64,000 nt of DNA from Pseudomonas aeruginosa PAO1 (GCF_000006765.1 NC_002516.2), one strand, 5' to 3'. Positions 19,463 through 35,638 are shown, counted from the stretch's first letter. Notes: a model not told the origin generated them from the sequence alone. Program-made: numbers and translations.

Positions 19463-19540
19463 GGTCGAATCGTCCTGGATGGAATTCGCCCATGAGTGCA
19501 ATCCGACGCCGGCTTTTTCAGCGTCGGGCAATATGAATTT

Positions 19541-20540: not shown

Positions 20541-21644
20541 ATGAAAAAAGTTTGTGCACTGGCGTTATCGATCCTGACGACGATCGGTGCGACAGCGGCG
20601 GACAGTGCATGGGCTGCGCAAACCAGCGTCCATCTTTACAACTGGTATGACTTCATCGCCCCGGAAACGCCCAAGGCTTTCCAGAAGGAAACCGGCACCC
20701 GTGTCGTCCTCGACACCTTCGACAGCGCCGAGACCGCGCAGGGCAAGCTGATGGTCGGCCGCTCCGGCTACGACGTGGTGGTGATCACCTCCAACATCCT
20801 GCCCGGGCTGATCAAGGCGGGCGTCCTCCAGGAACTCGACCGCGACCGGCTCCCCCACTGGAAGAACCTCGACGCGGACATCCTCGGGAAGCTTCAGGCC
20901 AACGATCCCGGCAATCGCTATGCCGTACCTTATCTCTGGGGAACCACCGGGATCGCCTACGATGTGGACAAGGTCCGCAAGCTGCTCGGCCCCGACGCGC
21001 CGGTCGACTCCTGGGACCTGGTCTTCAAGGAGGAGAACATCTCCCGCCTCAGCCAGTGCGGCGTGGCCACGCTGGACTCCTCCACCGAGCTGGTGTCCAT
21101 CGCCCTCAACTACCTGGGCCTGCCGCACAACAGCCAGAATCCCGAGGACTACCAGAAAGCCCAGGAACTGTTGCTGAAGGTTCGCCCCTACATTCGCTAT
21201 TTCGACTCCTCCAGAGTCGACACCGATCTCTCCAACGGCAACGTCTGCGTGGTGGTCGGCTGGCAGGGCACGGCCTACATGGCCCAGGTCAACAACGAAC
21301 AGGCCGGGAACGGTCGCCATATCGCCTACAGCATTCCCCGGGAAGGCTCGCTGGTCTGGGCCGAGAACATGGTGCTGCTCAAGGATGCACCGCATCCGCA
21401 GCAGGGTTATGCGCTGATCGACTACCTGCTGCGTCCGGAGGTCATCGCCAGGACCTCCAACTACGTGGGCTATCCGAATGGCAACCAGGCGGCGCTGCCG
21501 CTGGTAGAGCGGAAACTGCGGGAAAACCCGGCGGTTTACCTGAGCAAGGAAACCATGGCGACCCTCTTCCCGCTGGAAACCCTGCCACTGAAGGTCGAGA
21601 GAATCCGTACCCGGGTCTGGAGCCGGGTCAAGACCGGGAGCTGA
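20541..21644 (+). CDS. Periplasmic putrescine/spermidine-binding protein, PotD/PotF family (PA2592-like)
   Basis: LYNWYDFIAPET, SGYDVVV, PYLWGTTGIAY, IPREGSLVWAENMV. Confidence 0.9.
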   Translation: MKKVCALALSILTTIGATAADSAWAAQTSVHLYNWYDFIAPETPKAFQKETGTRVVLDTFDSAETAQGKLMVGRSGYDVVVITSNILPGLIKAGVLQELDRDRLPHWKNLDADILGKLQANDPGNRYAVPYLWGTTGIAYDVDKVRKLLGPDAPVDSWDLVFKEENISRLSQCGVATLDSSTELVSIALNYLGLPHNSQNPEDYQKAQELLLKVRPYIRYFDSSRVDTDLSNGNVCVVVGWQGTAYMAQVNNEQAGNGRHIAYSIPREGSLVWAENMVLLKDAPHPQQGYALIDYLLRPEVIARTSNYVGYPNGNQAALPLVERKLRENPAVYLSKETMATLFPLETLPLKVERIRTRVWSRVKTGS

Positions 21645-21850
21645 CACCCGCCCGAGACGCCCCCTGGAAGCGCGGGAGCGCCCGGAGCCAGAAAAATCCA
21701 GCGAGGTCCGCCAGGACCGGCGTTCGCGTCTTTCACCGGGCGAGGCTCTGCCTCGTCCGTCAGGATGCGGCTTGCCGGCTGACCTGCGACCGATAGAGAT
21801 ACCTCTCCCCCAGGGCGGGAAAGCCCCGGGCATGCCTGATGGAGAAAACC

Positions 21851-22423
21851 ATGCTTATCCATTTCTGCCCCAGGCTGCTGACGCCTGCGGGGTTCGACCT
21901 GCCGTGCGAGTTGATCGACATCCGCATCAAGGAGTTCGACCTGCACCTGCTTGGCGGGCGCGACGTGGTGGCGCGTCACCCCCTCCCCGACAAGCGCTAC
22001 CACGTGGCCTGCCGCAAGTCCGGCTGCAAGGCGGTGAATGGCCTGCTGGTGGACGTGGAAAAGCACGTTCCGCTGTTCACCGTGGACACCCGCTGGAGCA
22101 TCGACGCCGAAGTGGTCCTGCGTCACCGCGTCGAGTACGTGGTGCTCGACGCCGAGCACGATGCGGTGAGCGACTACATGCTGCTGTGGTGCGACGAGGT
22201 GCCCAACTACTTCCTCGGCCAGAGCACCCCGGCCATGCAGGTTCCGTTGATGGAGCTGATGCGCGGCAATGCGTTGCAGACCGAGCGGCAGGATGTGTTC
22301 CGCCTGCCGACGCTGAGGTCCGAACGCCTGCGCCAGGGCAACGCCGATGCCAACCAGCATCTTCCGAGCCGTGAGCAGGCGTTCCACGTCAAGGCCGAGC
22401 AGATCAGCTATGGGCTGGCCTGA
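21851..22423 (+). CDS. qteE: Quorum threshold expression protein QteE
   Basis: 190-aa ORF MLIHFCPRLLTP... with GGAGA RBS, downstream of the PA2592-like gene; alternative start 21839; identity from recalled locus position. Confidence 0.75.
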   Translation: MLIHFCPRLLTPAGFDLPCELIDIRIKEFDLHLLGGRDVVARHPLPDKRYHVACRKSGCKAVNGLLVDVEKHVPLFTVDTRWSIDAEVVLRHRVEYVVLDAEHDAVSDYMLLWCDEVPNYFLGQSTPAMQVPLMELMRGNALQTERQDVFRLPTLRSERLRQGNADANQHLPSREQAFHVKAEQISYGLA

Positions 22424-22489: not shown

Positions 22490-23449
22490 TCAGTGCCGCG
22501 GCTGCCATACCTCCACGGCGCGCGCATCCACCGGTTTGGGTAGCAGTCCCTGGGCGTGGAAGGCGTCGGCGATGCGCTGTTGCTCGTCGAGACCATCTGC
22601 GCTCACCGGTTGTACGTCGTAGCTGCGCCGCGCATTCGCCTGCTCGACGGTAGCGGCATCGAGATTGCCCCACAGCGGCCCCAGCACCTTGGCCGCGTCG
22701 GCCGGGTGGCTCTTGAGCCAGCGCCCGGTGCGCTGCAGTTCGGCGAAGACCTGCTGGAGCACTTCAGGATGTTTCCTGGCGTAGTCGCTGGAGGCGAGGT
22801 AGTAGCGCTGGTAGCTGGCCAGGCCCTGGCCGTCGGCCAGTACCCGCGCGCGTTGCTGGCGCTGGGCGCTTGCCACGTAGGGGTCCCAGGTCACCCAGGC
22901 GTCGACCTTGCCGTTCTCGAAGGCGGCGCGGCCGTCGGCTGGCGTCAGGTAGGCTGGCTGGATGTCGGAGAACTCAAGCCCGGCGCTGGCCAGCGCGGCG
23001 ATCAGCAGGTAGTGGCTGCCGGCGGCCTTGGTCACGGCGATGCGCCTGCCCTTCAGCTCGGCCAGGGACTTCAGCGGCGAATGTTCGCCGACCAGTATCG
23101 CCTGCGCCGCGGGCGAAGGTGTTTCGCGGGCGAAGTAGGTCAGGCGAGCACCCGCCGCCTGGGCGAACACCGGCACGGTGTCGGCGACGTCGGCGGAGAG
23201 ATCGACGTTGCCGACATTGAGTGATTCGAGCAACGGCAGGCCGCTGGGGAACTCATGCCAGGACACCCGGATGCCCTGCCTAGCCAACTCGCGCTCGAAG
23301 GTGCCCTGGCTGCGGATCAGGGTCAGCAGAGTCGAGGATTTCTGGAAGCCGATGCGCAGGACCTCCTCGGCCTGTGCGCCACCAATGCCCGACAGGACGA
23401 CGGAAGCGGCAAACACGATGGCCAAGCGACGCAGGAACGGACGAGACAT
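22490..23449 (-). CDS. SsuA-like aliphatic sulfonate-binding protein (PA2594-like)
   Basis: LRIGFQKSS, WHEFPSGLPLLESLNVGNVD, VDAWVTWDPY; AGGAG RBS. Confidence 0.9.
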   Translation of the reverse strand: MSRPFLRRLAIVFAASVVLSGIGGAQAEEVLRIGFQKSSTLLTLIRSQGTFERELARQGIRVSWHEFPSGLPLLESLNVGNVDLSADVADTVPVFAQAAGARLTYFARETPSPAAQAILVGEHSPLKSLAELKGRRIAVTKAAGSHYLLIAALASAGLEFSDIQPAYLTPADGRAAFENGKVDAWVTWDPYVASAQRQQRARVLADGQGLASYQRYYLASSDYARKHPEVLQQVFAELQRTGRWLKSHPADAAKVLGPLWGNLDAATVEQANARRSYDVQPVSADGLDEQQRIADAFHAQGLLPKPVDARAVEVWQPRH

Positions 23450-23548
23450 GCGATGACTCCTGGGATAGGTGCGAGCGCCCGCAGGGACGGGAGTTCCAGC
23501 TGCCGGCGACGGAACGGATAGATTATTTGAATAAAAAACAATCGATAA

Positions 23549-23563
23549 ATAACTTATAGTTAT
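23549..23563. promoter_or_regulatory. AT-rich dyad ATAACT-TAT-AGTTAT (T-N11-A, LysR/CysB-type candidate)
   Basis: Perfect 6-bp inverted repeat in the AT-rich region upstream of the PA2594-like gene. Confidence 0.45.
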
Positions 23564-23584
23564 CAATTAATGCCCGGGCAGCGC

Positions 23585-24541
23585 CTACCGGATATCCGCA
23601 TCCGACGCCTGCCTGACCGCAAAGCCGCTGGCGAAGGTCGGCCGCACATCGAGGCGCTGCGGAATCAATCCATGGGCCTGGTAGAAATCGGCGGTCTCCT
23701 GCTGCTGGCCGAGCGTTCGCTCATCCAGCGCCTGCCAACGCAAGCGCCGGCGTTCGAACTGCAAGCGCGCGGCGTCCTCGGGGAAGCCGATGATCTGCGC
23801 CAGGCTTCGCGAATACTCGTCCAGGTGCAGGTACGCCCAGCGCTGGGCGCTGGCCAGGCGTTGCAGGTAGTCCTGCAGCACGGCGCGTTTCGCCGGGTCG
23901 GCCAGTGCGCTATCGGTAGCAGCGAGGAAGCTGTTGCCAGCCCACAGGCCGCGACCGTCGACCAGTACCCGAGCCTTGTCGGCGGTCTCCGCGAACGCGG
24001 TGTAGGGCTCCCAGGTCGCCCAGGCATCCACGGAACCATTGGCGAGGGCCATTTTCGCGTCCACCGGGCCGAGGAAGCGGAATTCGACGTCCTTCTCGCC
24101 CAGCCCGACCGAGGCCAAGGCCTTGAGCGCGACGAAGTGGCCGATGGAACCGCGCCCGGTGGCAATGCGCTGACCTTTCAGGTCGTTGGCCGAGCGCAGC
24201 GGCGAATCCCCTCTCACCAGCACGGCGGTACCGTAGGGATCGGATTTGTCGACGGCGATGGCCTTCAGCCGGGCACCGGCGGCCAGGGCGAAGAGCAATG
24301 GCGCGTCGCCGATGATGCCGGCATCCACCGCACCGGCATTGAGTGCTTCGGCGAGGGGGGCGGCGGCGGGGAATTCGAACCAGCGGATGTCGTAGGTCAG
24401 GTCGTCCAGCGCGCCGGCAGCCTCCAACTGGGCGCGCATGTTGCCCTTCTGGTCGGCCAGGCGCAGGGTCACGCGCTCGTCGGCACAGGCCTGGCCGACG
24501 AGCAGGCAGAGAAGCAGGAACAGGCTCAGGGTCTGACGCAT
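23585..24541 (-). CDS. SsuA-like ABC substrate-binding protein (PA2595-like)
   Basis: Signal MRQTLSLFLLL; WFEFPAAAPLAEALNAGAVD, DAWATWEPY; GAGGAG RBS. Confidence 0.88.
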   Translation of the reverse strand: MRQTLSLFLLLCLLVGQACADERVTLRLADQKGNMRAQLEAAGALDDLTYDIRWFEFPAAAPLAEALNAGAVDAGIIGDAPLLFALAAGARLKAIAVDKSDPYGTAVLVRGDSPLRSANDLKGQRIATGRGSIGHFVALKALASVGLGEKDVEFRFLGPVDAKMALANGSVDAWATWEPYTAFAETADKARVLVDGRGLWAGNSFLAATDSALADPAKRAVLQDYLQRLASAQRWAYLHLDEYSRSLAQIIGFPEDAARLQFERRRLRWQALDERTLGQQQETADFYQAHGLIPQRLDVRPTFASGFAVRQASDADIR

Positions 24542-24552
24542 TCCGTAACTCC

Positions 24553-25539
24553 TCAACGCTGGCCGACGCGGAGGTCGGCGGGCAACTGGCGGGCCACTTC
24601 GGCGGCACCGGCGGACAGGCTGAAGTCGAACGCCGGGGCGACCTCCAGCGACTTCGGCAGCACGCCTTCGGCATGGAAGAAATCGGCGGCGGTCTGCAAG
24701 GTGGCGGCAACCTCCGGACCGAAGACCACAGGACTGATGCGCGCCTCGCCAACCCAGCGCCGAGTGACTTCGCGCGGCATGTTCAGATCCTTGGCCAGGG
24801 CCTCGGCGAACGCCTCCGGGTGCCTCAGGGCCCAGGCCTGGGCACGCGCCAGGCGGGTCAGCAGGTCGCTGATCGCGGCCTTCTTGCGGGCGATCGCAGC
24901 GTCGCTGGCCAGGGCATAGGAGTAGCCGGTCATGATCCCGGCACCGTTGTCGATGACCCGCGCCTGATCGAGCAGCACGGCGCTGGAGGTATAGGGCTCC
25001 CAGGGCACCCAGGCGTCTACCGAGCCACGCACCAGGGCGGCGCGGCCGTCCACCGGACCAAGGAAGGAAAAGCTTACGTCCTGCGGTCCGAGGCCGGCGC
25101 GACGCAACGCGCCAAGGGCGAGGAAATGCCCCCAGCCGCCGCGATTGACGGCAATGCGCTTGCCCTTGAGGCCGGCCACCGAACGGATCGGCGAGTCCTT
25201 GCCGACCACCAGCGCCACGGTCGCCGGGTTGAAGTGCCAGGCGCCCACCGCCTTGAGCGGCGCGCCGGCAGCGTAGACGAAGAGGAACGGGATGTCGCCG
25301 GTAAAGCCTATGTCCAGGGCCCCGGCGTTGAGCGCCTCGAGCACCGGTGCACCGGAGGGGAACGCCGACATTTCCAGCTTGTACGGCAGGTCGTCGAGCT
25401 CGCCGGACGCGCGCAGGGCGGCGTAGCGGTCGCCCTTCACATCGCCCAGGCGCAGGCTGATGAGGTCGGCGGCGCTGGCGGCTCCAGCCAGCAGGGTCGC
25501 GGCCAGCAGGCCGGCAAGCACACACAGGGGTCGTTTCAT
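24553..25539 (-). CDS. SsuA-like ABC substrate-binding protein (PA2596-like)
   Basis: Signal MKRPLCVLAG; FPSGAPVLEALNAGALD, DAWVPWEPY. Confidence 0.88.
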   Translation of the reverse strand: MKRPLCVLAGLLAATLLAGAASAADLISLRLGDVKGDRYAALRASGELDDLPYKLEMSAFPSGAPVLEALNAGALDIGFTGDIPFLFVYAAGAPLKAVGAWHFNPATVALVVGKDSPIRSVAGLKGKRIAVNRGGWGHFLALGALRRAGLGPQDVSFSFLGPVDGRAALVRGSVDAWVPWEPYTSSAVLLDQARVIDNGAGIMTGYSYALASDAAIARKKAAISDLLTRLARAQAWALRHPEAFAEALAKDLNMPREVTRRWVGEARISPVVFGPEVAATLQTAADFFHAEGVLPKSLEVAPAFDFSLSAGAAEVARQLPADLRVGQR

Positions 25540-25645
25540 GGGCAATCTCCAGGCAGCTCCGCACGGAGCCGGGGCTATCTGGGCTATCCGTTCCGCCGGT
25601 GCGGTCGCCGACAAGGCCAGGGTCGAGAATCGTGGGAGGTACGTT

Positions 25646-26797
25646 TCAAAGACTCAGCGCCGCCCTCCCCGCCGCGCTCCAGACGCTATCTTTCTGTGGC
25701 GTGTGGACACGTCCGCAAAGCACGTCGCGGTAGTGCCGCTGTAGCGGATTGTGCCGGCTGAGGCCGTGGTTGCCGCTCAGTTCCAGGGCCTTCTCGACCA
25801 CCGCCAACGCGTTGTCGATGACCGCGACCTTGAGCAGCCCGGAGTCGCTGGCGGGCAACTGTCCGCAGCACGCGGCATCGAGCAGCAGGCGGTTCTGCAG
25901 GAGCAGGCCGTCGATCTCGCCGAGCGCCTCCTGCATCCTCGGCAGGCTCGCCAACGGCGCGCCGAGACTGGCCGGCACGCGCTCGCGCAGCCAGCCGGCG
26001 AGCCACTCGCGGGCGCTCCCGGCGATACCGTCGTAGAGAGCGCCAAGCAACACCGCGCTAGCCTGGGCGAAGTCGCGCAGCACGGCCTGGTCCGGCGCCG
26101 GAGGCTGGTCGTGGGGATGCAGGCCGATGGCGTTTTCCAGAGGCACCGCCACCTCTTCGAAGAGCACCTCGTGGCTGCCGCTGGCGCGCATGCCCAGATG
26201 GTCCCAGCTCTCCACGATACGGATGCCTGGGCTGTCGCGGCGCACCAGCCAGGTACCCACGCGGGGGATCGGCTCGTCGCTGCGCGCCCATACCGCCAGC
26301 CAGGTCAGGCCGGGAATGCCGGTGGTGTAGAGCTTGTGCCCGGACAGCTGCCAGCCGTCGCCGACACGCCGCGCCAGCGTACCCGGCAGACCGCCGCGTG
26401 ACGGCGAACCCAGCTCGGGCTCCACGCGCAGGCTATTGATCAACGCCCCCTGCTCCAGCACCTCGCGCGCCACGCGCCGCTTGAGCGCGCCGGGCCAATC
26501 GGGGTTATCGGCCAGGCGCCGCAAATGCAGGTACTGCATGCACAGCACCAGGGCCGTGGAGGGTTCGCCGCGAGCCACCGCGCCGATTACCCGGCGCAGC
26601 TCGCCGAGGCTGGCGCCGGGACCGCCGAGCGCAGGCGGCAAGGCCAGGGCGAGCAGCCCGTGGTGTCGCAGCAGGGCCAGGTTGGCATGGGGAAAATCTC
26701 CGCTGCGGTCATGGGCATCGGCGCTTTCCGCCAGTTGCCGGGTCAGTTCTGGCAGCCGTTCATCGAACGCCGCCGAGGGAGTCTGCAGGACGGCCAT
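25646..26797 (-). CDS. Acyl-CoA dehydrogenase-superfamily enzyme (DszC/SfnB/YdbM-like; PA2597-like)
   Basis: SGDFPHAN, LSGHKLYTTG, WDHLGMRASGSHEV, PLQRHYRDV. Confidence 0.85.
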   Translation of the reverse strand: MAVLQTPSAAFDERLPELTRQLAESADAHDRSGDFPHANLALLRHHGLLALALPPALGGPGASLGELRRVIGAVARGEPSTALVLCMQYLHLRRLADNPDWPGALKRRVAREVLEQGALINSLRVEPELGSPSRGGLPGTLARRVGDGWQLSGHKLYTTGIPGLTWLAVWARSDEPIPRVGTWLVRRDSPGIRIVESWDHLGMRASGSHEVLFEEVAVPLENAIGLHPHDQPPAPDQAVLRDFAQASAVLLGALYDGIAGSAREWLAGWLRERVPASLGAPLASLPRMQEALGEIDGLLLQNRLLLDAACCGQLPASDSGLLKVAVIDNALAVVEKALELSGNHGLSRHNPLQRHYRDVLCGRVHTPQKDSVWSAAGRAALSL

Positions 26798-26801
26798 GGG
26801 A

Positions 26802-27884
26802 TCAGGCCGTGGCGCGCCGGCGCTCGCGCTCGGCGACTTTGGCGCGGGTCAGCGGGATCAGCTCGCGGCCATATTCCACGGCATCGGCGAGGGGATCGAA
26901 ACCGCGAATGAGGATATTGCGCACGCCCAGGTCGTAGTAGGCGAGCAGGGCGTCGGCCACCTGTTCCGCGGTACCGACCAGGGCGGTGGAGTTGTGCCCG
27001 CCACCGACCAGCCTGGCGATTCCGGTCCAAAGGCGCTCGTCGAGGCGCTCGCCCTGCTCCACCGCCTTGAGCAGACGCTGGGCGCCGACGCTCTGCGGCT
27101 TGCCCTTGGGGAAGCCGGCCTCGCCCAGGCGCGCGCCGGCGCTTGCGCGTATCGCCTCGGCCTTGGCCCAGGCCTCGTCCTCCGTGCGCCCGAGGATGGG
27201 CCGGAACGACAGGCTGAATTCCACTTCGCGACCATTCGAGCGCGCCTGTTCGCGCACAGCGGAGATGGTTTCGGCGGCCTGTGCCAGGGGTTCGCCCCAG
27301 AGCATGAACACATCGGCCTGCTTGCCGGCGACCTTCAGCGCGGCTTCCGAGGAGCCGCCGAAATACACCGGAATGTGCGGTTTCTGCTGCGGACGGATGG
27401 CCGAGAAGGCGTGCTCCACGCGGTAGTGCGCGCCGTGGAAATCGAAGGGTTCGGTGCTGGTCCAGGTGCGCTTGAGCAGTTCGATGAATTCGTCGCTGCG
27501 GGCATAGCGCTGGTCGTGGTCGAGATAATCGCCGTCCTTGCGCTGGTCGGCGTCGCTGCCGCCGCTGATGATATGCACCGCCAGGCGCCCGTCGAGGAGG
27601 TGTTCGAGGGTCGCCAGCTTGCGCGCGGCCAGGGTCGGGGCGACGAAACCGGGGCGGTGCGCCAGCAGCAGACCGATCCGGGAAGTGGCCAGGCCAGCGG
27701 CGGCGGCCACCAGGAATCCATCCGGCTGGTCCGACCAGTAGCCGACCAGGATTCGATCGAAGCCGGCCTCTTCGTGGGCGCGTGCGAAAGCGGCGATGTA
27801 AGGCTTGTCGAGGATAGGTCCGACCGGCGCGTGGGTCTCCGAGGCCAGGCGATGGCCGATCATGCCGAGAAACTGGATGCTCAT
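26802..27884 (-). CDS. Luciferase-like FMNH2-dependent monooxygenase (SsuD/MsuD-like; PA2598-like)
   Basis: AHEEAGFDRILVGY, LLAHRPGFVAPTLAARKLATL, IPVYFGGSSEAA. Confidence 0.9.
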   Translation of the reverse strand: MSIQFLGMIGHRLASETHAPVGPILDKPYIAAFARAHEEAGFDRILVGYWSDQPDGFLVAAAAGLATSRIGLLLAHRPGFVAPTLAARKLATLEHLLDGRLAVHIISGGSDADQRKDGDYLDHDQRYARSDEFIELLKRTWTSTEPFDFHGAHYRVEHAFSAIRPQQKPHIPVYFGGSSEAALKVAGKQADVFMLWGEPLAQAAETISAVREQARSNGREVEFSLSFRPILGRTEDEAWAKAEAIRASAGARLGEAGFPKGKPQSVGAQRLLKAVEQGERLDERLWTGIARLVGGGHNSTALVGTAEQVADALLAYYDLGVRNILIRGFDPLADAVEYGRELIPLTRAKVAERERRRATA

Positions 27885-27893
27885 GGTCCGTAC

Positions 27894-28838
27894 TCAGTGG
27901 AAGGCTTCGTTGAAGGACGTGTCGATCACCGTGGAAGTGTCGAACGGCTTGGGCAAGGCACCGGTCTGCAGCAGGAAATCCGCGGTCTCCTGGTAGTCGG
28001 TGGCGGCCTGGGCGTCTACCGGGCCGACGCTCATGCCGGCCTGGCCGATCCAATGGCGGGAGACTGCCCGGTCGAGATTGGCCTTCTGCGCCCAGAGGTC
28101 GGCGTACTGCTCCTTGTGTGCCTCGACCCAGGCCCGTGCCTTGCGCAGGCGGCCGAGGAAGTCGGCGATCTGCGCGCGCCTGGGCTCGATGGAAGCAGCG
28201 TTGGCGGCGATGCTGGACAGCCCCGGCATCAGGTCGCGGGCGGTGAGAATCGGCCGTGCGCCGGAAACCACGATCTGCTGCGAGATATACGGCTCCCACA
28301 CCGGAAAGGCATCGATGCTGCCGCGCGGCAAGGCGGCGGCGGCGTCGATCGGCATCAGCTTGACGAACTCCACGTAGTCCTTCGGCAGGCCGGCTTTCTC
28401 CAGCGCGCGCAAGGTCAGTTGCTGGCTCCAGGCACCGGGCCAGTAGGCGACTTTCCTGCCCTTGAGATCGGCAATGCTGCGCACCGGAGAATCCTTCGGC
28501 ACCAGCAGGGCTATGGTATCGGGGTTCTGCCGCGAGACGCCGACCAGCTTCACCGGCGCGCCCTTGGCGGCGAGGAAGATGAAGCCCGAGTCGCCGAGGA
28601 AACCCAGGTCCAGCGCTCCGGCCTGCAACCCTTCGGCCACCGGCGCGGCGGACTGGAAATGCTTCCATTCGACCTGGTAAGGCGCGCCTTCGAGAACTCC
28701 CGAGGCCTCCATTGAAGCCCGCACGTTGTAGTAGTTCTGGTCGCCCACACGCAACGTCGGCAGGTCTGCGGCCTGGGCCAGGGAGGCACCGAGCAGAAGC
28801 GTGGCGAAGCTGGTTAACAGGTATTGCTTGAGTTTCAT
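27894..28838 (-). CDS. SsuA-like ABC substrate-binding protein (PA2599-like)
   Basis: Signal peptide; WKHFQSAAPVAEGLQAGALD, DAFPVWEPY. Confidence 0.88.
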   Translation of the reverse strand: MKLKQYLLTSFATLLLGASLAQAADLPTLRVGDQNYYNVRASMEASGVLEGAPYQVEWKHFQSAAPVAEGLQAGALDLGFLGDSGFIFLAAKGAPVKLVGVSRQNPDTIALLVPKDSPVRSIADLKGRKVAYWPGAWSQQLTLRALEKAGLPKDYVEFVKLMPIDAAAALPRGSIDAFPVWEPYISQQIVVSGARPILTARDLMPGLSSIAANAASIEPRRAQIADFLGRLRKARAWVEAHKEQYADLWAQKANLDRAVSRHWIGQAGMSVGPVDAQAATDYQETADFLLQTGALPKPFDTSTVIDTSFNEAFH

Positions 28839-28847
28839 CGGAGCTCC

Positions 28848-29936
28848 TCAACCGGCGTGCCGCAACAGCGGCAGGCGGGCGATATGGTCATGTATGGCGG
28901 GAATCAGGCCCTGGCCGTAGCGCACGGCGTCGCCGAGCGGATCGAAGCCTCGAATCAGGAAGGTCGAGACGCCCAGCCGGTAGTACTCGCCAAGCGCAGC
29001 GGCAACCTGCTCGGGGGTGCCTACCAGGGCGGTGGAGTTCCAGCGCGCCCCGGTCAGCCGGGCCACGCCGGTCCACAAACGGCTGTCGAGCACTTCGCCC
29101 TGCTCGGCAGCGGCCAGCAGGCGCTGCGAACCGACGTTCTGCGGCTGGTGGTCGCGCAGCGGCAGACCGAGGCGCGCACGGTTCTCGCGGACCTGTTCGA
29201 GCACCTCGGCGGCACGCTTCCAGGCGGCCTCCTCGGTATCCGCGACGATCGGCCGGAATGACACCGAGAAGCGCAGATCGCGTCCCTGGGCCTTGGCGGC
29301 GGCGCGCACTCGGCGGATATGCCCGTCGACCGCGGCCAGCGGCTCGCCCCAGAGCATGTAGGTGTCGGCGTGCCTGGCGGCGACCTCGATGGCTGCGTCG
29401 GAGGAGCCACTGAAATAGATCGGTATGTGCGGCGACTGGCGCGGGCGCACCGCTGGCGAGGCGCCCTGGAAGCGGTAGAACTCGCCGTCGAAATCCACCG
29501 GTCCCGTGGCGGTCCAGATAGCACGCAGGGCTTGCAGGTATTCGTCGGTACGGGCGTAGCGGCGGTCATGGTCGAGGTAGTCGCCATCGCGCGCGAGGTC
29601 CTCGTCGTTACCACCACTGACTACGTTCAGGGCCAGGCGGCCCTCGCTGAACTGATCCAGGGTAGCCAGTTGGCGTGCCGCCAGCGGCGCTGCAATCACC
29701 CCCGGGCGATAGGCCAGGAGAACGCCAAGGCGCCGGGTGGCAGCGGCGACGAAGGAACTGACCACCGCGCCCTCGGCGGCATTGCTGAAATACCCCACCA
29801 GCACCCGGTCGAAGCCGGCGTCCTCATGGGCCTGGGCGAAACGCCGGACGAAACCGGCGTCCACAGCCTCCCCCAACGGCTGGTCCACCTCGGAACTCGG
29901 TGTGGCGGTGATCATGCCGAGAATTTCCACGCTCAC
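28848..29936 (-). CDS. Luciferase-like FMNH2-dependent monooxygenase (PA2600-like)
   Basis: AHEDAGFDRVLVGY, LLAYRPGVIAAPLAARQLATLD, IPIYFSGSSDAA. Confidence 0.9.
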   Translation of the reverse strand: MSVEILGMITATPSSEVDQPLGEAVDAGFVRRFAQAHEDAGFDRVLVGYFSNAAEGAVVSSFVAAATRRLGVLLAYRPGVIAAPLAARQLATLDQFSEGRLALNVVSGGNDEDLARDGDYLDHDRRYARTDEYLQALRAIWTATGPVDFDGEFYRFQGASPAVRPRQSPHIPIYFSGSSDAAIEVAARHADTYMLWGEPLAAVDGHIRRVRAAAKAQGRDLRFSVSFRPIVADTEEAAWKRAAEVLEQVRENRARLGLPLRDHQPQNVGSQRLLAAAEQGEVLDSRLWTGVARLTGARWNSTALVGTPEQVAAALGEYYRLGVSTFLIRGFDPLGDAVRYGQGLIPAIHDHIARLPLLRHAG

Positions 29937-30070
29937 GCTGTTGCCCTCGCCTGGGCCGCTCGACTGATAAGGTTGGCGGCTGTCGTTATAAGAAAAACAT
30001 CTGCATGGGTGCTTTTCTTAGAAGCTACAGGCTGAAACTACATGATGGAAATTCATTTTTGTCATATCTT

Positions 30071-30091
30071 AATATGCTAAAAGCGCATATT
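30071..30091. promoter_or_regulatory. LysR-type dyad AATATGC-N7-GCATATT upstream of the monooxygenase operon
   Basis: Perfect 7-bp inverted repeat containing T-N11-A. Confidence 0.6.
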
Positions 30092-30254
30092 TAGCTTTTC
30101 CGTCTTTTCGTTTCCCAAGGCGGACACTATGCGTAGCCGCCCTCGCTCCCTCTTCCCTCTGAAGCGAAAAGGGGCTCGCAGGGGAATGTTGATCCCGACT
30201 GCAGCCCCTTCTCATTCACGCTCCCGTCTCCCGGGGATCTCCCGGCGCCGCTAC

Positions 30255-31151
30255 TCAACCGGCTTGCATATCCAACCCCTCGGCCACCGCCCTGCCGAAC
30301 AGCCGTGCCGGCGTCTCCAGATTGCCCAGCAGGCGCGGACGCACCAGCCAGAGCTGGATCAGCGGCTGGAAATCCTCCAGTTGCAGCACCTGCAACTGAT
30401 CGCGGTAGCGGCTACGCGCCAGGGCCGGCGCCGGCACCAGGCCGAGACCCCGGTCCGCGGCGACCAGGCCCAGTTGCAGCTCGCTGCCGAAAGTCTCGAG
30501 GTTCAGTTGCAGGCCCAGGCCCTGATCGGCCAGGGCCCGTTGCAGGCCGGCACGGAAGCCGCAGCCATCGGGGTTGAGCACCCAGCCATGGTGGTAGCAA
30601 TCGAGCAGGCGTCGCGCCTGGATGGCACTGTCGCGGGCGACCACCACGCAGAGTTCCATGCGCCCTAGGGGCGTGGCGCCGAGTTCTTCGGGGAACACCT
30701 TGCTTGGCGGAAACAACACCACTGCCGCGTCCAGTTCGGCATTCTCCAGGCGCGCCAGCAAATGGCTGCCCCAGCCAGTGCCGACCTGCGCGCGCAGCTC
30801 CGGGTACTCGTCGGCCAGCCGCCGAAGGGCATCCAGCAACACCACCTCGCCGATACTCTGCGGCACGCCCAGGCGCAGCACGCCACTTGGTGTGGCGTCA
30901 CCGGCCACCAGTTCACGCAGGCCATCCACCTCGCGCAGCACCCGCCGGCACTGTTCGTAGACCCGCAGTCCGCTGGCGGTGGGTTTGAGCGGCTTGGTAT
31001 TGCGGTCCAGCAATGCCACTCCGAGGGACTCCTCCAGGCTCTGTACCCGCCGGGTGATCGCAGACTGGGTCAGGCCCAGGCTCTCGGCGGCCTGGCTCAG
31101 GGAAGCGTTGCGGATCACCGCGACGAAGGCGTCGATGTCATCGATTTTCAT
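30255..31151 (-). CDS. LysR-family regulator (PA2601-like)
   Basis: N-terminal HTH SLSQAAESLGLTQSAITRRVQSLEESLG. Confidence 0.95.
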   Translation of the reverse strand: MKIDDIDAFVAVIRNASLSQAAESLGLTQSAITRRVQSLEESLGVALLDRNTKPLKPTASGLRVYEQCRRVLREVDGLRELVAGDATPSGVLRLGVPQSIGEVVLLDALRRLADEYPELRAQVGTGWGSHLLARLENAELDAAVVLFPPSKVFPEELGATPLGRMELCVVVARDSAIQARRLLDCYHHGWVLNPDGCGFRAGLQRALADQGLGLQLNLETFGSELQLGLVAADRGLGLVPAPALARSRYRDQLQVLQLEDFQPLIQLWLVRPRLLGNLETPARLFGRAVAEGLDMQAG

Positions 31152-31163
31152 GGGGCCGGCACC

Positions 31164-31188
31164 AATTGCATTTCTCGCATATTAGCTT
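31164..31188. promoter_or_regulatory. LysR-type site TGC-N7-GCATATTAGCTT between the LysR and dioxygenase genes
   Basis: T-N11-A dyad in the divergent promoter region; resembles the site at 30071. Confidence 0.55.
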
Positions 31189-31263
31189 AGATGCAAAATG
31201 CATTTCAGGAATAAAAAAGCGTTTGCTACCGTACCGCCAGAACTTCCCGGAGTGAATCCCCGC

Positions 31264-31869
31264 ATGTCATCCATCCTGCGCCTCGACCGCCTGCGCCAGT
31301 TCATCGGCGAGCTGGCGACACTGCTCGACAGCCGTCCCGACGAATCCACCCTGCTCGCCCAAGCCCACCCCCTGCTGGCCGAGCTGGTGCACCAGGACGA
31401 CTGGCTGCCGGAAGACTGCGCCCGCCCCGATCCACAGCGCTACCAACAGTACCTGCTGCATGTCGACTCACGGCAGCGCTTCTCGGTGGTCAGCTTCGTC
31501 TGGGGGCCGGGCCAGATCACACCGGTACACGATCATCGGGTCTGGGGCCTGATCGGCATGCTCCGCGGGGCCGAATACTCGCAGCCGTACGCCTTCGATG
31601 CGGGGGGGCGTCCGCATCCCAGCGGAGCCCGTCGACGCCTGGAGCCCGGCGAGGTCGAAGCGCTGTCGCCACGCATTGGCGACGTGCACCAGGTGAGCAA
31701 CGCCTTCAGCGACCGCACATCCATCAGTATCCACGTCTACGGCGCCAATATCGGTGCGGTACGGCGTGCCGTGTTCAGCGCCGAAGGTGAGGAAAAACCC
31801 TTCATTTCCGGCTATTCCAACAGCCGCTTGCCCAATATCTGGGACCTGTCGAAAGAGAACCCCGCATGA
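31264..31869 (+). CDS. 3-mercaptopropionate dioxygenase (Gln-type cysteine dioxygenase homolog; PA2602-like)
   Basis: Cupin 3-His TPVHDHRVWG...GDVHQV, Ser-His-Tyr SISIHVY, RYQQYLL. Confidence 0.9.
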   Translation: MSSILRLDRLRQFIGELATLLDSRPDESTLLAQAHPLLAELVHQDDWLPEDCARPDPQRYQQYLLHVDSRQRFSVVSFVWGPGQITPVHDHRVWGLIGMLRGAEYSQPYAFDAGGRPHPSGARRRLEPGEVEALSPRIGDVHQVSNAFSDRTSISIHVYGANIGAVRRAVFSAEGEEKPFISGYSNSRLPNIWDLSKENPA

Positions 31870-33449
31870 GCCAGATCGCCGTACGCACCTTCCACGATAT
31901 CCGCGCCGCTCTCCTCGCCCGCCGGGAGCTGGCGCTGCTCGACGTGCGCGAGGAGGACCCGTTCGCCCAGGCCCATCCCCTGTTCGCCGCCAACCTGCCG
32001 CTGTCCAGGCTGGAACTGGAGATCCATGCCCGGGTGCCGCGCCGCGACACGCCGATTACCGTCTACGACGACGGCGAAGGCCTGGCGCCGGTCGCCGCGC
32101 AACGCCTCCTCGACCTCGGCTACAGCGACGTGGCCTTGCTCGATGGCGGCCTGTCCGGTTGGCGCAACGCCGGCGGCGAGCTGTTCAGGGATGTGAACGT
32201 GCCGAGCAAGGCCTTCGGCGAACTGGTGGAGGCCGAGCGCCACACGCCATCGCTGGCCGCGGAGGAAGTACAGGCTTTGCTCGACGCCAGGGCCGAGGCG
32301 GTGATCCTGGATGCCCGTCGTTTCGACGAATACCAGACCATGAGTATCCCCGGCGGCATCAGCGTGCCCGGCGCCGAACTGGTGCTGCGCGTCGCCGAAC
32401 TGGCGCCGGACCCGCGCACCCGGGTGATAGTCAACTGTGCCGGGCGCACTCGTAGCATCATCGGTACCCAGTCGCTGCTCAACGCCGGCATCCCCAACCC
32501 GGTGGCGGCATTACGCAACGGCACCATCGGCTGGACGCTGGCCGGTCAGCAACTGGAACACGGCCAGACGCGACGCTTCGGTGCGATCTCCCAGGACACT
32601 CGCAAGGCCGCCGCCCAGCGCGCCCGTGCCGTCGCCGACCGCGCCGGCGTCGAACGCCTCGACCTGGCCGGTCTGGCCCAATGGCAGGACGAGCACGACC
32701 GCACCACCTACCTGCTCGACGTACGCACGCCCGAGGAATACGAAGCCGGTCACCTGCCTGGCTCCCGCTCCACGCCCGGAGGCCAGCTGGTTCAGGAAAC
32801 CGACCATGTCGCCAGCGTGCGCGGCGCGCGCCTGGTACTGGTGGACGACGATGGCGTACGCGCCAACATGAGCGCCTCCTGGCTGGCCCAGATGGGCTGG
32901 CAGGTCGCGGTACTGGACGGACTCTCCGAGGCCGACTTCAGCGAGAGGGGCGCCTGGAGCGCGCCGCTGCCGAGGCAACCCCGGGCCGACACCATCGACC
33001 CGACCACCCTCGCCGACTGGCTGGGCGAACCGGGCACCCGGGTGCTCGACTTCACCGCCAGCGCCAACTATGCGAAACGCCACATCCCCGGCGCCGCCTG
33101 GGTATTGCGCAGCCAGTTGAAGCAGGCACTGGAACGGCTGGGCACGGCCGAGCGCTACGTACTCACCTGCGGCAGCAGCCTGCTGGCGCGCTTCGCCGTG
33201 GCGGAAGTCCAGGCACTCAGCGGCAAGCCGGTGTTCCTTCTCGACGGCGGCACCAGCGCCTGGGTCGCCGCGGGCCTGCCGACGGAAGACGGCGAAAGCC
33301 TGTTGGCGTCGCCGCGCATCGACCGCTACCGCCGCCCCTACGAAGGTACCGACAATCCGCGCGAAGCGATGCAGGGCTACCTGGACTGGGAGTTCGGCCT
33401 GGTGGAGCAACTCGGTCGCGACGGAACCCACGGCTTCTTCGTGATCTGA
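31866..33449 (+). CDS. Four-domain rhodanese/thiosulfate sulfurtransferase (PA2603-like)
   Basis: Four repeats starting LLDVRE/ILDARR/LLDVRT/VLDFT; loops VYDDGEG, VNCAGRTRS, LVDDDGVRA, LTCGSSLLA; ATGA overlap with the dioxygenase. Confidence 0.9.
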   Translation: MSQIAVRTFHDIRAALLARRELALLDVREEDPFAQAHPLFAANLPLSRLELEIHARVPRRDTPITVYDDGEGLAPVAAQRLLDLGYSDVALLDGGLSGWRNAGGELFRDVNVPSKAFGELVEAERHTPSLAAEEVQALLDARAEAVILDARRFDEYQTMSIPGGISVPGAELVLRVAELAPDPRTRVIVNCAGRTRSIIGTQSLLNAGIPNPVAALRNGTIGWTLAGQQLEHGQTRRFGAISQDTRKAAAQRARAVADRAGVERLDLAGLAQWQDEHDRTTYLLDVRTPEEYEAGHLPGSRSTPGGQLVQETDHVASVRGARLVLVDDDGVRANMSASWLAQMGWQVAVLDGLSEADFSERGAWSAPLPRQPRADTIDPTTLADWLGEPGTRVLDFTASANYAKRHIPGAAWVLRSQLKQALERLGTAERYVLTCGSSLLARFAVAEVQALSGKPVFLLDGGTSAWVAAGLPTEDGESLLASPRIDRYRRPYEGTDNPREAMQGYLDWEFGLVEQLGRDGTHGFFVI

Positions 33450-33583: not shown

Positions 33584-33673
33584 TGGCGGAGGCGGTGAGA
33601 TTCGAACTCACGGAAGAGTCTCCCCTTCGACGGTTTTCAAGACCGTTGCCTTAAACCACTCGGCCACACCTCC
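33584..33673 (-). tRNA. tRNA-Ser(TGA)
   Basis: GGAGGTGTGGCCGAGTGGTTTAAGGCAACGGTCTTGAAAACCGT...GTTCGAATCTCACCGCCTCCGCCA, 90 nt with long variable arm. Confidence 0.98.
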
Positions 33674-33716: not shown

Positions 33717-33802
33717 ACTCTATCGATTGGCCCTGGCAGAGGCTTTGCTATCATGCCCATCAGTACGTCATGGACCCGTTCCCGTTAAGGAGTACCCACA
33801 CC

Positions 33803-34471
33803 ATGCAAGAACAGCAATATCAGCTGAACTCCGCCGTCGCGGAACAGCGTGAAGTCAGCGGCGTTCTGCGCAATACCTACGGCCTGCTGGCACTCACCCT
33901 GGCCTTCAGCGGCCTGGTGGCCTACGTTTCGCAGCAGATGCGCCTGCCCTATCCGAACGTGTTCGTGGTGCTGATCGGCTTCTACGGCCTGTTCTTCCTC
34001 ACCGTGAAGCTGCGCAACAGCGCCTGGGGTCTGGTCAGCACTTTCGCCCTGACCGGCTTCATGGGCTACACGCTCGGCCCGATCCTCAACATGTACCTCG
34101 GCCTGCCCAACGGCGGCAGCGTCATCACTTCGGCGTTCGCCATGACCGCCCTGGTGTTCTTCGGCCTGTCCGCCTATGTGCTGACCACCCGCAAGGACAT
34201 GAGCTTCCTGTCCGGCTTCATCACCGCCGGCTTCTTCGTCCTGCTGGGCGCCGTGCTGGTATCGCTGTTCTTCCAGATCAGTGGCCTGCAACTGGCGATC
34301 AGCGCCGGCTTCGTCCTGTTCTCCTCGGCGATGATCCTCTACCAGACCAGCGCGATCATCCACGGCGGCGAACGCAACTACATCATGGCCACCATCAGCC
34401 TGTACGTGTCGATCTACAACCTGTTCATCAGCCTGTTGCAGATCTTCGGCATCGCCGGCGGCGACGACTGA
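33803..34471 (+). CDS. yccA: Bax inhibitor-1/YccA family membrane protein
   Basis: [35 protein letters not shown]; next to tRNA-Ser as in enterics. Confidence 0.92.
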
Positions 34472-34515: not shown

Positions 34516-34581
34516 CATTTGCGGACCGGCAAAACACAGGCATTGGTTTATCATTCGAAGAAATCCTTCGCGTATCGCAGC

Positions 34582-34977
34582 ATGAAATTCGCCATCGCCC
34601 TATTCGACCCTCCCCACTCCCCCGCCGCCCGCCGCGCGCTGCGCTTCAGCGAAGCCGCGCTGGCCGGCGGGCACGAAATCGTCCGCCTGTTCTTCTACCA
34701 GGACGGCGTGCACAGCGCCTCGGCCAACGTCGTGAGCGGCCAGGACGAGTTCGACCTGCCCGCCGCCTGGCGCGAGTTGGTCGAGCGCAACGGCCTGGAC
34801 GCCGTGGTCTGCATCGCCGCCGCCCTGCGCCGCGGCGTGCTGAACGCCGAGGAAGCCGAACGCTACGGCCGTCCCGGCGCCAACCTTGGCGCACCATGGG
34901 AACTGTCCGGACTCGGCCAGTTGCACGAGGCGGCGCAAAGCGCGGACCGCCTGGTCTGCTTCGGAGGCGACCGATGA
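34582..34977 (+). CDS. tusD: Sulfurtransferase complex subunit TusD (DsrE)
   Basis: LFFYQDGV, VCIAAALRRG (active Cys), SGLGQL. Confidence 0.93.
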   Translation: MKFAIALFDPPHSPAARRALRFSEAALAGGHEIVRLFFYQDGVHSASANVVSGQDEFDLPAAWRELVERNGLDAVVCIAAALRRGVLNAEEAERYGRPGANLGAPWELSGLGQLHEAAQSADRLVCFGGDR

Positions 34978-35333
34978 GCCAGTCGCTGCTGATCATCAGC
35001 CGCCAGTCGCCCTGGTCCGGCCCGAGCGCCCGCGAGGCGCTGGACATAGCCCTGGCCGGCGGCGCCTTCGATCTACCGGTCGGCATGCTGTTCCTCGACG
35101 ACGGCGCGTTCCAGCTGGCTCCCGGCCAGCATCCTGCGCACCTGCAGCAGAAGGACCTGCAGGCCAACCTGCAGGCCCTGCCGATGTTCGGCGTGGACGA
35201 CCTCTACGTCTCGGCCCGTAGCCTGCGCGAGCGTGGCCTGGCTGAAGAGCGCCTGGCCCTCGCGGTCGAGGTGCTCGACGACCAGGCCCTGCGCGACCTG
35301 CTGCAACGCTACGACCAGGTGATTACCCTCTGA
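34974..35333 (+). CDS. tusC: Sulfurtransferase complex subunit TusC (DsrF)
   Basis: AREALDIALA, LFLDDGAFQL, SLRERGL. Confidence 0.92.
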   Translation: MSQSLLIISRQSPWSGPSAREALDIALAGGAFDLPVGMLFLDDGAFQLAPGQHPAHLQQKDLQANLQALPMFGVDDLYVSARSLRERGLAEERLALAVEVLDDQALRDLLQRYDQVITL

Positions 35334-35638
35334 TGGCCACGACCCTCCACGTACTGTCCCGCTCGCCGTTCAATGACGGCCGCCTGGGCAGTTGCCTGTA
35401 CCTGCTCAACCCCGGCGACGGCCTGCTGCTCTGCGGCGACGCCGTGCACGCCCTGCTGGCCGGCAGCCACGCCTGCCAGGCCCTGGAACTGATGCCGGCG
35501 GAAATCGAACTGTTCGCCCTGCTGGAAGACCTCCAGGCGCGCGGTATCGAGGACGTCCCCGCTCGCCTGGTGGCGGTGGACTACCCCGGCTTCGTCGAAC
35601 TCGCCACCCGCTTCGACAAGGTCAACAGTTGGCTATGA
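35333..35638 (+). CDS. tusB: Sulfurtransferase complex subunit TusB (DsrH)
   Basis: TLHVLSRSPF, DGLLLCGDAV, EDLQARGI, VDYPGFVEL. Confidence 0.92.
   Translation: MATTLHVLSRSPFNDGRLGSCLYLLNPGDGLLLCGDAVHALLAGSHACQALELMPAEIELFALLEDLQARGIEDVPARLVAVDYPGFVELATRFDKVNSWL

Follow-up and report, generated by a model that had tools for sequence, protein, structure and literature searches.

Described Organosulfur Systems and the PA2594-PA2603 Locus

The closest described counterparts of the locus treated here are the ssuEADCBF genes of Escherichia coli and Pseudomonas, the msuEDC genes of Pseudomonas, the dszABC/sfn genes, and the 3-mercaptopropionate catabolism of Variovorax paradoxus and Advenella mimigardefordensis. 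The locus itself, PA2594-PA2603 of Pseudomonas aeruginosa, corresponds to positions 22490-33449 of a 64-kb stretch of DNA (the whole of which is called the window), and consists of ten intact, contiguous genes encoding four SsuA-family binding proteins, two luciferase-type monooxygenases, one flavoenzyme of the acyl-coenzyme A (CoA) dehydrogenase (ACAD) fold, a LysR regulator, a thiol dioxygenase, and a four-domain rhodanese. These genes very probably form one co-regulated and co-conserved sulfur-scavenging unit. By a narrow balance, we also favour the fuller picture, in which a LysR-coordinated unit works under sulfur limitation, scavenges organosulfur acids of the 3-mercaptopropionate type, and ends in sulfite.

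Like ssuEADCBF, the locus combines SsuA-family binding proteins with SsuD/MsuD-like monooxygenases of the type using reduced flavin mononucleotide (FMN), and is induced by sulfur starvation. It differs in lacking SsuE and SsuBC, in encoding four divergent binding proteins instead of one, in having monooxygenases that reach about half of the SsuD cutoff and in which part of the sulfonate motif is changed, and in the addition of a thiol dioxygenase, a rhodanese, and a dedicated LysR regulator. The resemblance to msuEDC lies in the pairing of MsuC, an ACAD-fold enzyme that turns a sulfinate into the sulfonate, with MsuD, a desulfonating enzyme of the luciferase type and the best match of PA2598 and PA2600 in the PDB. 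However, PA2597 is remote from MsuC (37 bits), no MsuE is encoded here, the substrates are likely larger and carboxylated, and it is the thiol dioxygenase that would supply the sulfinate in situ.

The Variovorax and Advenella pathway (Mdo, CoA activation, AcdDPN7) begins with the same dioxygenase family, places an ACAD-fold enzyme after the sulfinate, and involves TctC-type uptake of a precursor. Whereas it is a carbon-source route running through CoA esters, the present locus has no CoA-activating gene, is under sulfur-limitation control, and includes luciferase-like monooxygenases. The dszABC/sfn systems rely on the same two superfamilies, an ACAD-fold oxygenase and a luciferase-like enzyme cleaving carbon-sulfur (C-S) bonds, and need a separate flavin reductase, but here the Dsz/Sfn equivalog models score far under their thresholds and there is no DszB-type desulfinase. 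Reading of the upstream sequence revealed no sigma-54 (SfnR-type) promoter. A possible further parallel is offered by persulfide dioxygenase-rhodanese pairs and fusions, which couple a sulfur dioxygenase to rhodanese domains at the level of translation. The persulfide dioxygenase has a metallo-beta-lactamase fold, whereas PA2602 is a cysteine-dioxygenase-family cupin acting on a thiol.

The locus, then, belongs to the known sulfur-starvation two-component monooxygenase clusters and does not represent a new kind of system. Three features set it apart from those already known: the added thiol dioxygenase-rhodanese module with a dedicated LysR regulator, distinct enzyme subfamilies, and interchangeable uptake modules. 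A preliminary description, made from the sequence, had stated that it knew of no complete account of the system. This stands insofar as no paper was found that gives a substrate for PA2594-PA2600, or that treats the ten genes as one system, but the locus as such is known, through two crystal structures and several sulfur-starvation lists.

Gene Content and Sulfur-Starvation Response

The true frames, among many overlapping open reading frames, were chosen by codon-position guanine-plus-cytosine (GC) content (the window has 65% GC), and families were assigned by Pfam and NCBIfam profile searches, with equivalog and subfamily cutoffs used as class thresholds. Locus tags given in published papers (PA2602 for the dioxygenase, PA2603 for the rhodanese, and PA2601 for the LysR regulator; PA2594, PA2595, and PA2599 for binding proteins; PA2598 and PA2600 for luciferase-like proteins) identify the locus as PA2594-PA2603. 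Protein clusters sharing 98-99% identity with proteins of the window also bear the name P. aeruginosa. All ten genes that the preliminary description had named at 22490-33449 were recovered there, intact and contiguous:

22490..23449, minus strand: PA2594, SsuA-family periplasmic binding protein (TIGR01728, 205.8 bits against a cutoff of 163.5; signal-peptide-like N-terminus)
23585..24541, minus strand: PA2595, SsuA-family binding protein (TIGR01728; frame from codon-position GC)
24553..25539, minus strand: PA2596, SsuA-family binding protein (TIGR01728, 316.9 bits; start probably at about 25539)
25646..26797, minus strand: PA2597, ACAD-fold flavoenzyme (Pfam ACAD N/M/C domains)
26802..27884, minus strand: PA2598, luciferase-like monooxygenase, SsuD/MsuD paralogue (Bac_luciferase, 263 bits; MsuD 7JV3, 208.6 bits)
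27894..28838, minus strand: PA2599, SsuA-family binding protein (TIGR01728, 219.3 bits)
28848..29936, minus strand: PA2600, luciferase-like monooxygenase, first gene of the seven-gene operon (Bac_luciferase; GTG start, ATG in other species)
30255..31151, minus strand: PA2601, LysR-family regulator (HTH_1 and LysR_substrate; divergent from the dioxygenase gene)
31264..31869, plus strand: PA2602, 3-mercaptopropionate dioxygenase (201 of 201 residues as in PDB 3USS/4TLF; CDO_I domain)
31866..33449, plus strand: PA2603, four-domain rhodanese (four Pfam rhodanese stretches; PDB 1YT8 over the full length, 1166 bits)

The seven minus-strand genes at 22490-29936 are transcribed in the order PA2600, PA2599, PA2598, PA2597, PA2596, PA2595, PA2594, with intergenic gaps of 4-11 bp save two (106 and 135 bp). 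The LysR gene (30255-31151) lies on the same strand, separated from the operon by a 318-bp spacer, and the dioxygenase and rhodanese genes diverge from it. Three transcripts, namely PA2600-PA2594, PA2601, and PA2602-PA2603, are the best explanation of this layout. An apparently broken gene at 23570-24550 was dismissed: the 659-residue open reading frame is a spurious extension, and codon-position GC delimits a clean 318-residue gene at 23585-24541.

Published data place both halves of the cluster in the sulfate-starvation-induced regulon of P. aeruginosa. In a 2025 study of PAO1 under sulfur starvation, transcript log2 fold changes (log2FC) were 4.7 for PA2594, 5.2 for PA2598, and 4.9 for PA2600, and 2.3 for PA2602 and 2.6 for PA2603 (PMC12581299). 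Proteins raised in the same condition include PA2594, PA2595, PA2598, PA2599, PA2600, and PA2603; PA2602 is not listed (PMC12581299). Genes of PA2594-PA2603 are also found among sulfur-related genes elsewhere (PMC8466066, bioRxiv 10.1101/477984). Together with the common promoter element described below, the induction of both halves supports the co-regulation on which the preliminary description depended.

The unequal induction (log2FC about 5 against about 2.4) would suit another explanation, according to which the locus is made of two independent neighbours: a CysB-type operon, PA2600-PA2594, for alkanesulfonates or sulfones, and a detoxification module, PA2601-PA2603, for self-made or environmental 3-mercaptopropionate. 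We consider this rather unlikely, in view of the gene linkage and promoter element detailed in the following two sections.

Conservation of the Gene Set through Rearrangements

Species-representative genomes were scanned with the ACAD-fold protein, and contigs carrying homologues of the dioxygenase, the ACAD-fold enzyme, and the LysR regulator were added, giving 42 loci that were mapped by tblastn. Because this sampling was mostly seeded with the ACAD-fold gene, the counts below describe arrangements, not frequencies. In the layouts, LLM00 and LLM98 denote the PA2600- and PA2598-type luciferase-like monooxygenases, SBP99 and SBP95 the PA2599- and PA2595-type binding proteins, and ACAD the PA2597-type enzyme.

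The rhodanese, dioxygenase, LysR regulator, and ACAD-fold enzyme are linked in at least five gene arrangements, found in several Pseudomonas lineages, Klebsiella, and Serratia. Cluster conservation, which the preliminary description had named as a check of its proposal, thus holds, with the core genes staying together through rearrangements. In 11 species of the Pseudomonas clade and in Zestomonas thermotolerans, the layout is that of the window: the dioxygenase and rhodanese genes diverge from a LysR gene that is followed by LLM00, SBP99, LLM98, and ACAD. In Klebsiella huaxiensis and a Serratia strain, the same divergent pair faces a LysR gene followed by LLM98 (66-70% identity), ACAD (57-63%), SBP95 (67-68%), a binding protein, a permease, and an ATPase. 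Pseudomonas mosselii and another Pseudomonas keep the divergent pair as well and have, after the LysR gene, a permease, an ATPase, ACAD, a 2-hydroxyacid dehydrogenase, a class II aldolase, and a binding protein. In a Pseudomonas metagenome-assembled genome (MAG) and in Pseudomonas syringae pv. helianthi, the dioxygenase, rhodanese, ACAD, and binding-protein genes form one operon, divergent from the LysR gene. Two Pseudomonas putida strains, when combined, suggest a cluster of about 14 kb whose opposite ends are formed by LysR-ACAD and dioxygenase-rhodanese, a join inferred from the two strains and not seen on a single contig.

Within these loci, the rhodanese gene adjoins the dioxygenase gene in 20 of the 20 that carry the latter, the PA2597-type gene is the invariant partner of the dioxygenase-rhodanese-LysR set, and the PA2598-type gene adjoins the ACAD-fold gene in most of the 42. 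Orthologues of PA2601 (50-93% identity) hold the same position.

Partial sets, which favour two independent neighbours, do occur: Stutzerimonas kirkiae has the dioxygenase-rhodanese pair alone, and the ACAD-LLM98 pair is found without the dioxygenase outside Pseudomonas and Enterobacterales, in Oxalobacteraceae, Alphaproteobacteria, Bryobacterales, and 'delta' MAGs. Against this reading stands the linkage itself, which persists in at least five gene orders across several Pseudomonas lineages and two enterobacterial genera, including overlapping dioxygenase/rhodanese/ACAD operons. Moreover, a LysR orthologue (54-61% identity in Oxalobacteraceae) accompanies the ACAD operon even where the dioxygenase is missing.

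The 2-hydroxyacid dehydrogenase and class II aldolase genes recur as a pair beside the ACAD-fold gene in Collimonas, Duganella, Elstera, and several Pseudomonas. They occupy the following positions:

Locus L011, 12341-14189: 2-hydroxyacid dehydrogenase/aldolase pair
Locus L038, 10203-11949: the same pair
Locus L039, 11188-12947: the same pair
Locus L034, 1-884: the same pair
Locus L023, 2176-4000: the same pair

In P. mosselii-type clusters, the pair is accompanied by an M19 dipeptidase, an amine oxidase, and RidA. These neighbours suggest further steps on a carbon skeleton or an amino compound, which are not part of the P. aeruginosa version.

A Shared Element at Both Promoters

The control regions of the two halves contain the following elements:

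29985..30125, minus strand: AT-rich promoter core of the PA2600-PA2594 operon (141 bp, 37% GC; surroundings 65-68%)
30069-30077, minus strand: shared 9-mer of the operon promoter (GCATATTAA in the window, GCATATTAG in 12 relatives), right half of the dyad
30072-30090, minus strand: dyad ATATGC-N7-GCATAT of the operon promoter, in a T-N11-A arrangement
30165..30214, minus strand: GC-rich hairpin with a U run, terminator-like, just past the LysR stop codon (z-score -2.45)
31152..31263, between divergent genes: control region (112 bp, 49% GC against 65-68% around)
31177-31185, within TGC-N7-GCA (T-N11-A): exact copy of the shared 9-mer GCATATTAG, 79 bp ahead of the dioxygenase start

The AT-rich, LysR-type promoters of the preliminary description are, therefore, real features: the 37% GC core and the 49% GC divergent region contrast with the 65-68% GC around them, and the T-N11-A dyad is present. 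PA2601 itself carries both HTH_1 and LysR_substrate domains, has a divergent target, and has a T-N11-A dyad in its control region, as is characteristic of the LysR class. Scans for sigma-70 promoters and terminators gave nothing usable at either promoter. Since 5 of 200 shuffled sequences fold as well as the hairpin past PA2601, there is modest support for the view that it may separate the LysR transcript from the operon below.

Alignment of the intergenic regions of 12 species gives invariant blocks in both. In each of 11 orthologous loci (17.7-21.1 kb), GCATATTAG is present exactly twice, once per promoter, and Z. thermotolerans (L036) has the same two sites. In these relatives, one copy lies 70-90 bp ahead of the dioxygenase start and the other about 130 bp ahead of the first gene downstream of the LysR gene, each being oriented towards its gene. 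If one mismatch is allowed, 19 of the 20 loci that carry the dioxygenase have the upstream copy, including those of P. putida and S. kirkiae where no LysR gene is adjacent; P. mosselii (L039) is the exception, with no copy within one mismatch. The second copy occurs in all loci with the LysR-to-operon arrangement, and Klebsiella has the same extended box ahead of its monooxygenase gene. The box is absent or diverged at the LysR-ACAD promoters of Oxalobacteraceae and P. putida.

The 9-mer was not found at neighbouring sulfur genes of the same loci, for example tauABCD in five relatives, and its presence at both promoters but not there counts against two independent neighbours. The obvious candidate for the protein binding the box is PA2601.

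Chromatin immunoprecipitation sequencing has located peaks of two other proteins within 31152-31263, for BsrA at -74 of PA2602 and for GliR at the PA2601/PA2602 promoter (PMC8407307, PMC8151288). The BsrA peak is close to the shared box; BsrA and GliR are unrelated regulators.

Thiol Dioxygenase and Rhodanese

PA2602 is a characterized enzyme. The structures 3USS and 4TLF are named 3-mercaptopropionate dioxygenase, the reaction being the conversion of 3-mercaptopropionate to 3-sulfinopropionate, and the PDB construct and the alignment of orthologues move its start from 31198 to 31264. The start of PA2603 overlaps the PA2602 stop by 4 bases. The only two cysteines of the rhodanese, C191 and C435, belong to domains 2 and 4 and occupy the active-site loop position, where domains 1 and 3 have Asp, so that PA2603 would consist of two tandem modules, each with an inactive and an active domain.

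In Pseudomonas protegens CHA0, the orthologous dioxygenase-rhodanese pair has been described as one transcription unit, and deletion of the dioxygenase gene raises extracellular 3-mercaptopropionate (PMC12947264). P. protegens produces this antibiotic-like thiol, whose level the dioxygenase reduces (PMC12947264), which is in keeping with a separate detoxification module.

The ACAD-Fold Flavoenzyme

All four ACAD domains are matched in PA2597 by Pfam, and its AlphaFold2 model has a mean confidence score (pLDDT, predicted local distance difference test) of 84. The closest PDB matches are 5Z8T, a 'Flavin-containing monooxygenase' (34% identity), and 5GJ7 (both 196 bits), together with the sugar N-oxygenase KijD3; ordinary ACADs follow, and the 3-sulfinopropionyl-CoA desulfinase (5AF7/5AHS) ranks 30th. 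The fold by itself does not separate the two classes, as ACADs and ACAD-fold oxygenases score alike. The candidate roles of PA2597 are those of an oxygenase, a dehydrogenase, and a desulfinase, a flavin-dependent oxygenase being the probable one.

The preliminary description had called this protein DszC/SfnB-like, which is right for the superfamily and fails at the equivalog level. Although SfnB (TIGR04022) is the best NCBIfam match, it reaches 94.9 bits against a cutoff of 430.9. DszC (NF043015) reaches 30.9 against 850, and no DszC structure appears in the PDB search with a limit of E <= 1e-5. The second-best NCBIfam match, aligned over the full length, is the 3-sulfinopropanoyl-CoA desulfinase AcdDPN7 (NF042439), at 85.4 bits against 600.

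Two alternatives to a sulfinate oxygenase turn on these scores. In the first, of the Dsz/Sfn type, the substrate of PA2597 would be a thioether, such as 3-methylthiopropionate or thiodipropionate, and the product its sulfoxide or sulfone; C-S cleavage by a luciferase-like enzyme would then yield a thiol or sulfinate, and the dioxygenase would treat the freed 3-mercaptopropionate. The rank of SfnB, the ACAD-fold oxygenases among the structural neighbours, the altered sulfonate motif of the monooxygenases (which suits a non-sulfonate substrate), and a TctC precedent that concerns thiodipropionate (PMC8102459) are all in its favour. We nonetheless find it improbable, given that SfnB (95 of 431 bits), SfnG (154-159 of 383), and DszC (31 of 850) are all far under their cutoffs, that neither DszC nor DszA is found among the close structural matches, and that MsuD/SsuD, not SfnG, are the nearer relatives of the monooxygenases.

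In the second, PA2597 would be an AcdDPN7-type desulfinase releasing sulfite straight from the sulfinate, either unbound or in the form of its CoA ester, and the luciferase-like enzymes would serve other imported sulfonates. The full-length 85-bit match, the fold match to 5AHS, and the existence of clusters without an adjacent luciferase-like gene fit this proposal. It is very improbable when set against the cutoff of 600 bits, the 54 bits of 5AF7 against 196 for 5GJ7/5Z8T, and the lack of any CoA ligase or transferase in all the cluster versions examined.

For the preferred sulfinate oxygenase, two ACAD-fold enzymes acting on sulfinates have been solved, the methanesulfinate monooxygenase MsuC (6U76/6UUG) and the 3-sulfinopropionyl-CoA desulfinase AcdDPN7 (5AF7/5AHS). 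Because both solved ACAD-fold enzymes of sulfur metabolism take sulfinates, PA2597 is placed on the sulfinate, where it may work in the manner of MsuC.

The Luciferase-Like Monooxygenases

PA2598 and PA2600, which are 53% identical to each other, score 263 and 241 bits with Bac_luciferase. Both fail the SsuD equivalog (TIGR03565, cutoff 518.2), reaching about half of it (231.5 bits for PA2598 and 249.5 for PA2600), and the SfnG model gives 154-159 bits against 383. Their nearest solved structures are MsuD (7JV3, about 210 bits), SsuD (185-200), and then SfnG (106-124). In MsuD, the sulfonate-binding set comprises W195, R225, R296, and an RGG(A/S) loop (PMC8234197). From the comparison with this set, taken up below, we concluded that PA2598 and PA2600 belong to a subfamily of their own, in which the substrate pocket is changed. 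In the preliminary description, the steps from sulfide to sulfone and from sulfonate to sulfite were drawn from family names, and neither the equivalog thresholds nor the full sulfonate motif lends them support.

Binding Proteins and Uptake Components

The four binding proteins have signal-peptide-like N-termini, are 28-46% identical to one another, and all pass the TIGR01728 SsuA_fam cutoff (196-317 bits against 163.5); none passes the stricter PRK11553 model (140-276 against 299). Of the four, PA2595 is the one whose orthologues in other genomes are clearest; those of Klebsiella and Serratia share 67-68% identity with it and are followed by permease and ATPase genes. The open reading frame of PA2594 reaches 23566, and its probable start is the ATG at 23449, which leaves the following gap:

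23450..23584, minus strand: 135-bp intra-operon gap, 50% GC (some relatives have an extra ACAD-fragment gene at the same place)

In Pseudomonas citronellolis (L002, 13397-14305) and several relatives, this extra gene, between the PA2595 and PA2594 orthologues, encodes 302 residues and has the ACAD N-terminal domain as its sole domain. Pseudomonas carbonaria (L007, about 5750-8870) has an insert of about 3 kb with an ABC ATPase-like gene between the SBP99 and LLM98 orthologues.

The 'full pathway' of the preliminary description is not encoded in cis, as no homologue of an ATP-binding cassette (ABC) permease or ATPase, of TctA, or of a flavin reductase (Flavin_Reduct) is present in the whole 64-kb window; tblastn with the P. 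kuykendallii and Klebsiella permease and ATPase gave a best E of 0.11 across it. Relatives carry such components: a dedicated permease and ATPase stand at the operon end in P. kuykendallii, Klebsiella, and Serratia, and a flavin reductase gene is present at the locus of a related Pseudomonas MAG. It appears that the P. aeruginosa lineage gained LLM00-SBP99 and extra binding proteins, with the membrane components and flavin reductase encoded elsewhere. The binding protein, ATPase, permease, and TauD genes downstream in P. citronellolis were dismissed as the cognate transporter, being tauABCD, a separate system.

In P. carbonaria, Ectopseudomonas oleovorans, and Pseudomonas sp. CR1201 (GTDB loci), as well as in Z. 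thermotolerans, TctB-TctA-TctC-TctC take the place of the last three binding proteins. Tct systems transport carboxylates. In Variovorax, thiodipropionate uptake needs a TctC protein (PMC8102459). This exchange is the only hint at the substrate chemistry besides the dioxygenase itself, and the two together make the 3-mercaptopropionate-related substrate of the preliminary description a reasonable one.

The Proposed Route and Its Weak Points

The dioxygenase reaction, the induction under sulfur limitation, the linkage of the genes, and the shared box are shown, whereas the substrate of the system and its individual steps are inferred. In the picture that we favour, the four secreted SsuA-like proteins would capture different thiol, sulfinate, or sulfonate substrates and pass them to an ABC permease and ATPase, which should be encoded elsewhere because the P. 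aeruginosa cluster has neither. In the cytoplasm, PA2602 would dioxygenate the thiol to a sulfinate, on which PA2597 would then act, most likely by oxygenation to the sulfonate, by analogy with MsuC and methanesulfinate. PA2598, PA2600, or both would cleave the C-S bond with reduced FMN from a trans-encoded reductase, the sulfite entering cysteine synthesis. The rhodanese may handle sulfane sulfur or thiosulfate tied to these intermediates, and PA2601 would bind the shared T-N11-A box at both promoters. The specific order from sulfinate through sulfonate to sulfite is tentative and, in our estimate, doubtful. An equally guarded judgement applies to the possibility that this constitutes a new CoA-independent route from thiol through sulfinate and sulfonate to sulfite, made of a cupin dioxygenase, an ACAD-fold sulfinate oxygenase, a new SsuD-like desulfonating subfamily, and a dedicated LysR regulator with a conserved box, the whole being a module that Pseudomonas and Enterobacterales share, with interchangeable uptake (orphan binding proteins, ABC, TctABC).

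Several observations weigh against this picture. On the enzymatic side, PA2597 is only remotely like MsuC (6U76/6UUG; 36.9 bits, E = 2e-8) and the desulfinase 5AF7 (53.6 bits), and for its best structural relatives, 5GJ7 and 5Z8T, no stated substrate and no citing paper were found. In PA2598 and PA2600, the MsuD sulfonate motif is incomplete: the Trp is kept, R225 is replaced by Ser and H227 by Arg, and the RGG(A/S) loop is longer and different, with its Arg off the aligned position. In view of the R225 replacement and the changed loop, their substrate may be something other than a simple sulfonate. Clusters of the P. mosselii type contain the ACAD-fold gene but lack a luciferase-like gene next to it, and deletion of the rhodanese gene in CHA0 had no significant effect on 3-mercaptopropionate (PMC12947264). 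The literature yielded no biochemical or genetic result for PA2594-PA2600.

On the regulatory side, induction differs about six-fold between the two halves (PMC12581299). In the window alone, the 9-mer is not over-represented (4 matches with at most one mismatch against 3.4 expected), and since it is no commoner there than by chance, its weight comes from conservation across loci only. In S. kirkiae the box precedes the dioxygenase gene without a nearby LysR gene, which leaves PA2601 as a candidate for the protein binding the box.

Neighbouring Features of the Window

The composition of the cluster is ordinary and so gives no lead to a genomic-island origin, although a serine transfer RNA gene (UGA anticodon; 33584-33673, minus strand) stands immediately next to the rhodanese gene, where the cluster ends on its right side. 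DsrE, DsrE, DsrH, and DsrC genes, a sulfur relay of the TusDCB/TusE type, are found at 34519-35970 (plus strand), 1 kb past the cluster, from which they are separated by this transfer RNA gene and a Bax1-I family gene (33770-34471). A second sulfur-transfer set is thus found close to the rhodanese, perhaps by chance, perhaps not.

On the other side, past the last binding-protein gene, a DUF6012 protein (21839-22423, plus strand) and an orphan SBP_bac_8 binding protein (20541-21644, plus strand) take the place that tauABCD occupies in some relatives. Upstream of the region, at 16808-19531 (minus strand), is a TonB-dependent receptor that has an STN signalling domain at its N-terminus; Collimonas, Duganella, P. 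mosselii, and Klebsiella also have TonB-dependent receptors beside their ACAD-fold clusters. The window also includes a full-length match to the SrbA small RNA at 63373-63611 (plus strand; Rfam RF02872, 231 bits).

Implications for Sulfur Acquisition in Pseudomonads

Of the P. aeruginosa genes that respond strongly to sulfur starvation, some are still without a substrate, and PA2594-PA2600 belong to these. Bacterial 3-mercaptopropionate dioxygenases, by contrast, have been studied well at the enzyme level. The recognition of a conserved unit, a distinct monooxygenase subfamily, and interchangeable uptake turns a list of annotations into a defined hypothesis, which can be checked against expression, binding-site, and structural data. 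It bears on the role of 3-mercaptopropionate dioxygenase in pseudomonads and on the fate of its sulfinate product and, more widely, on how these bacteria obtain sulfur when sulfate is scarce and thiols or sulfonates are abundant.

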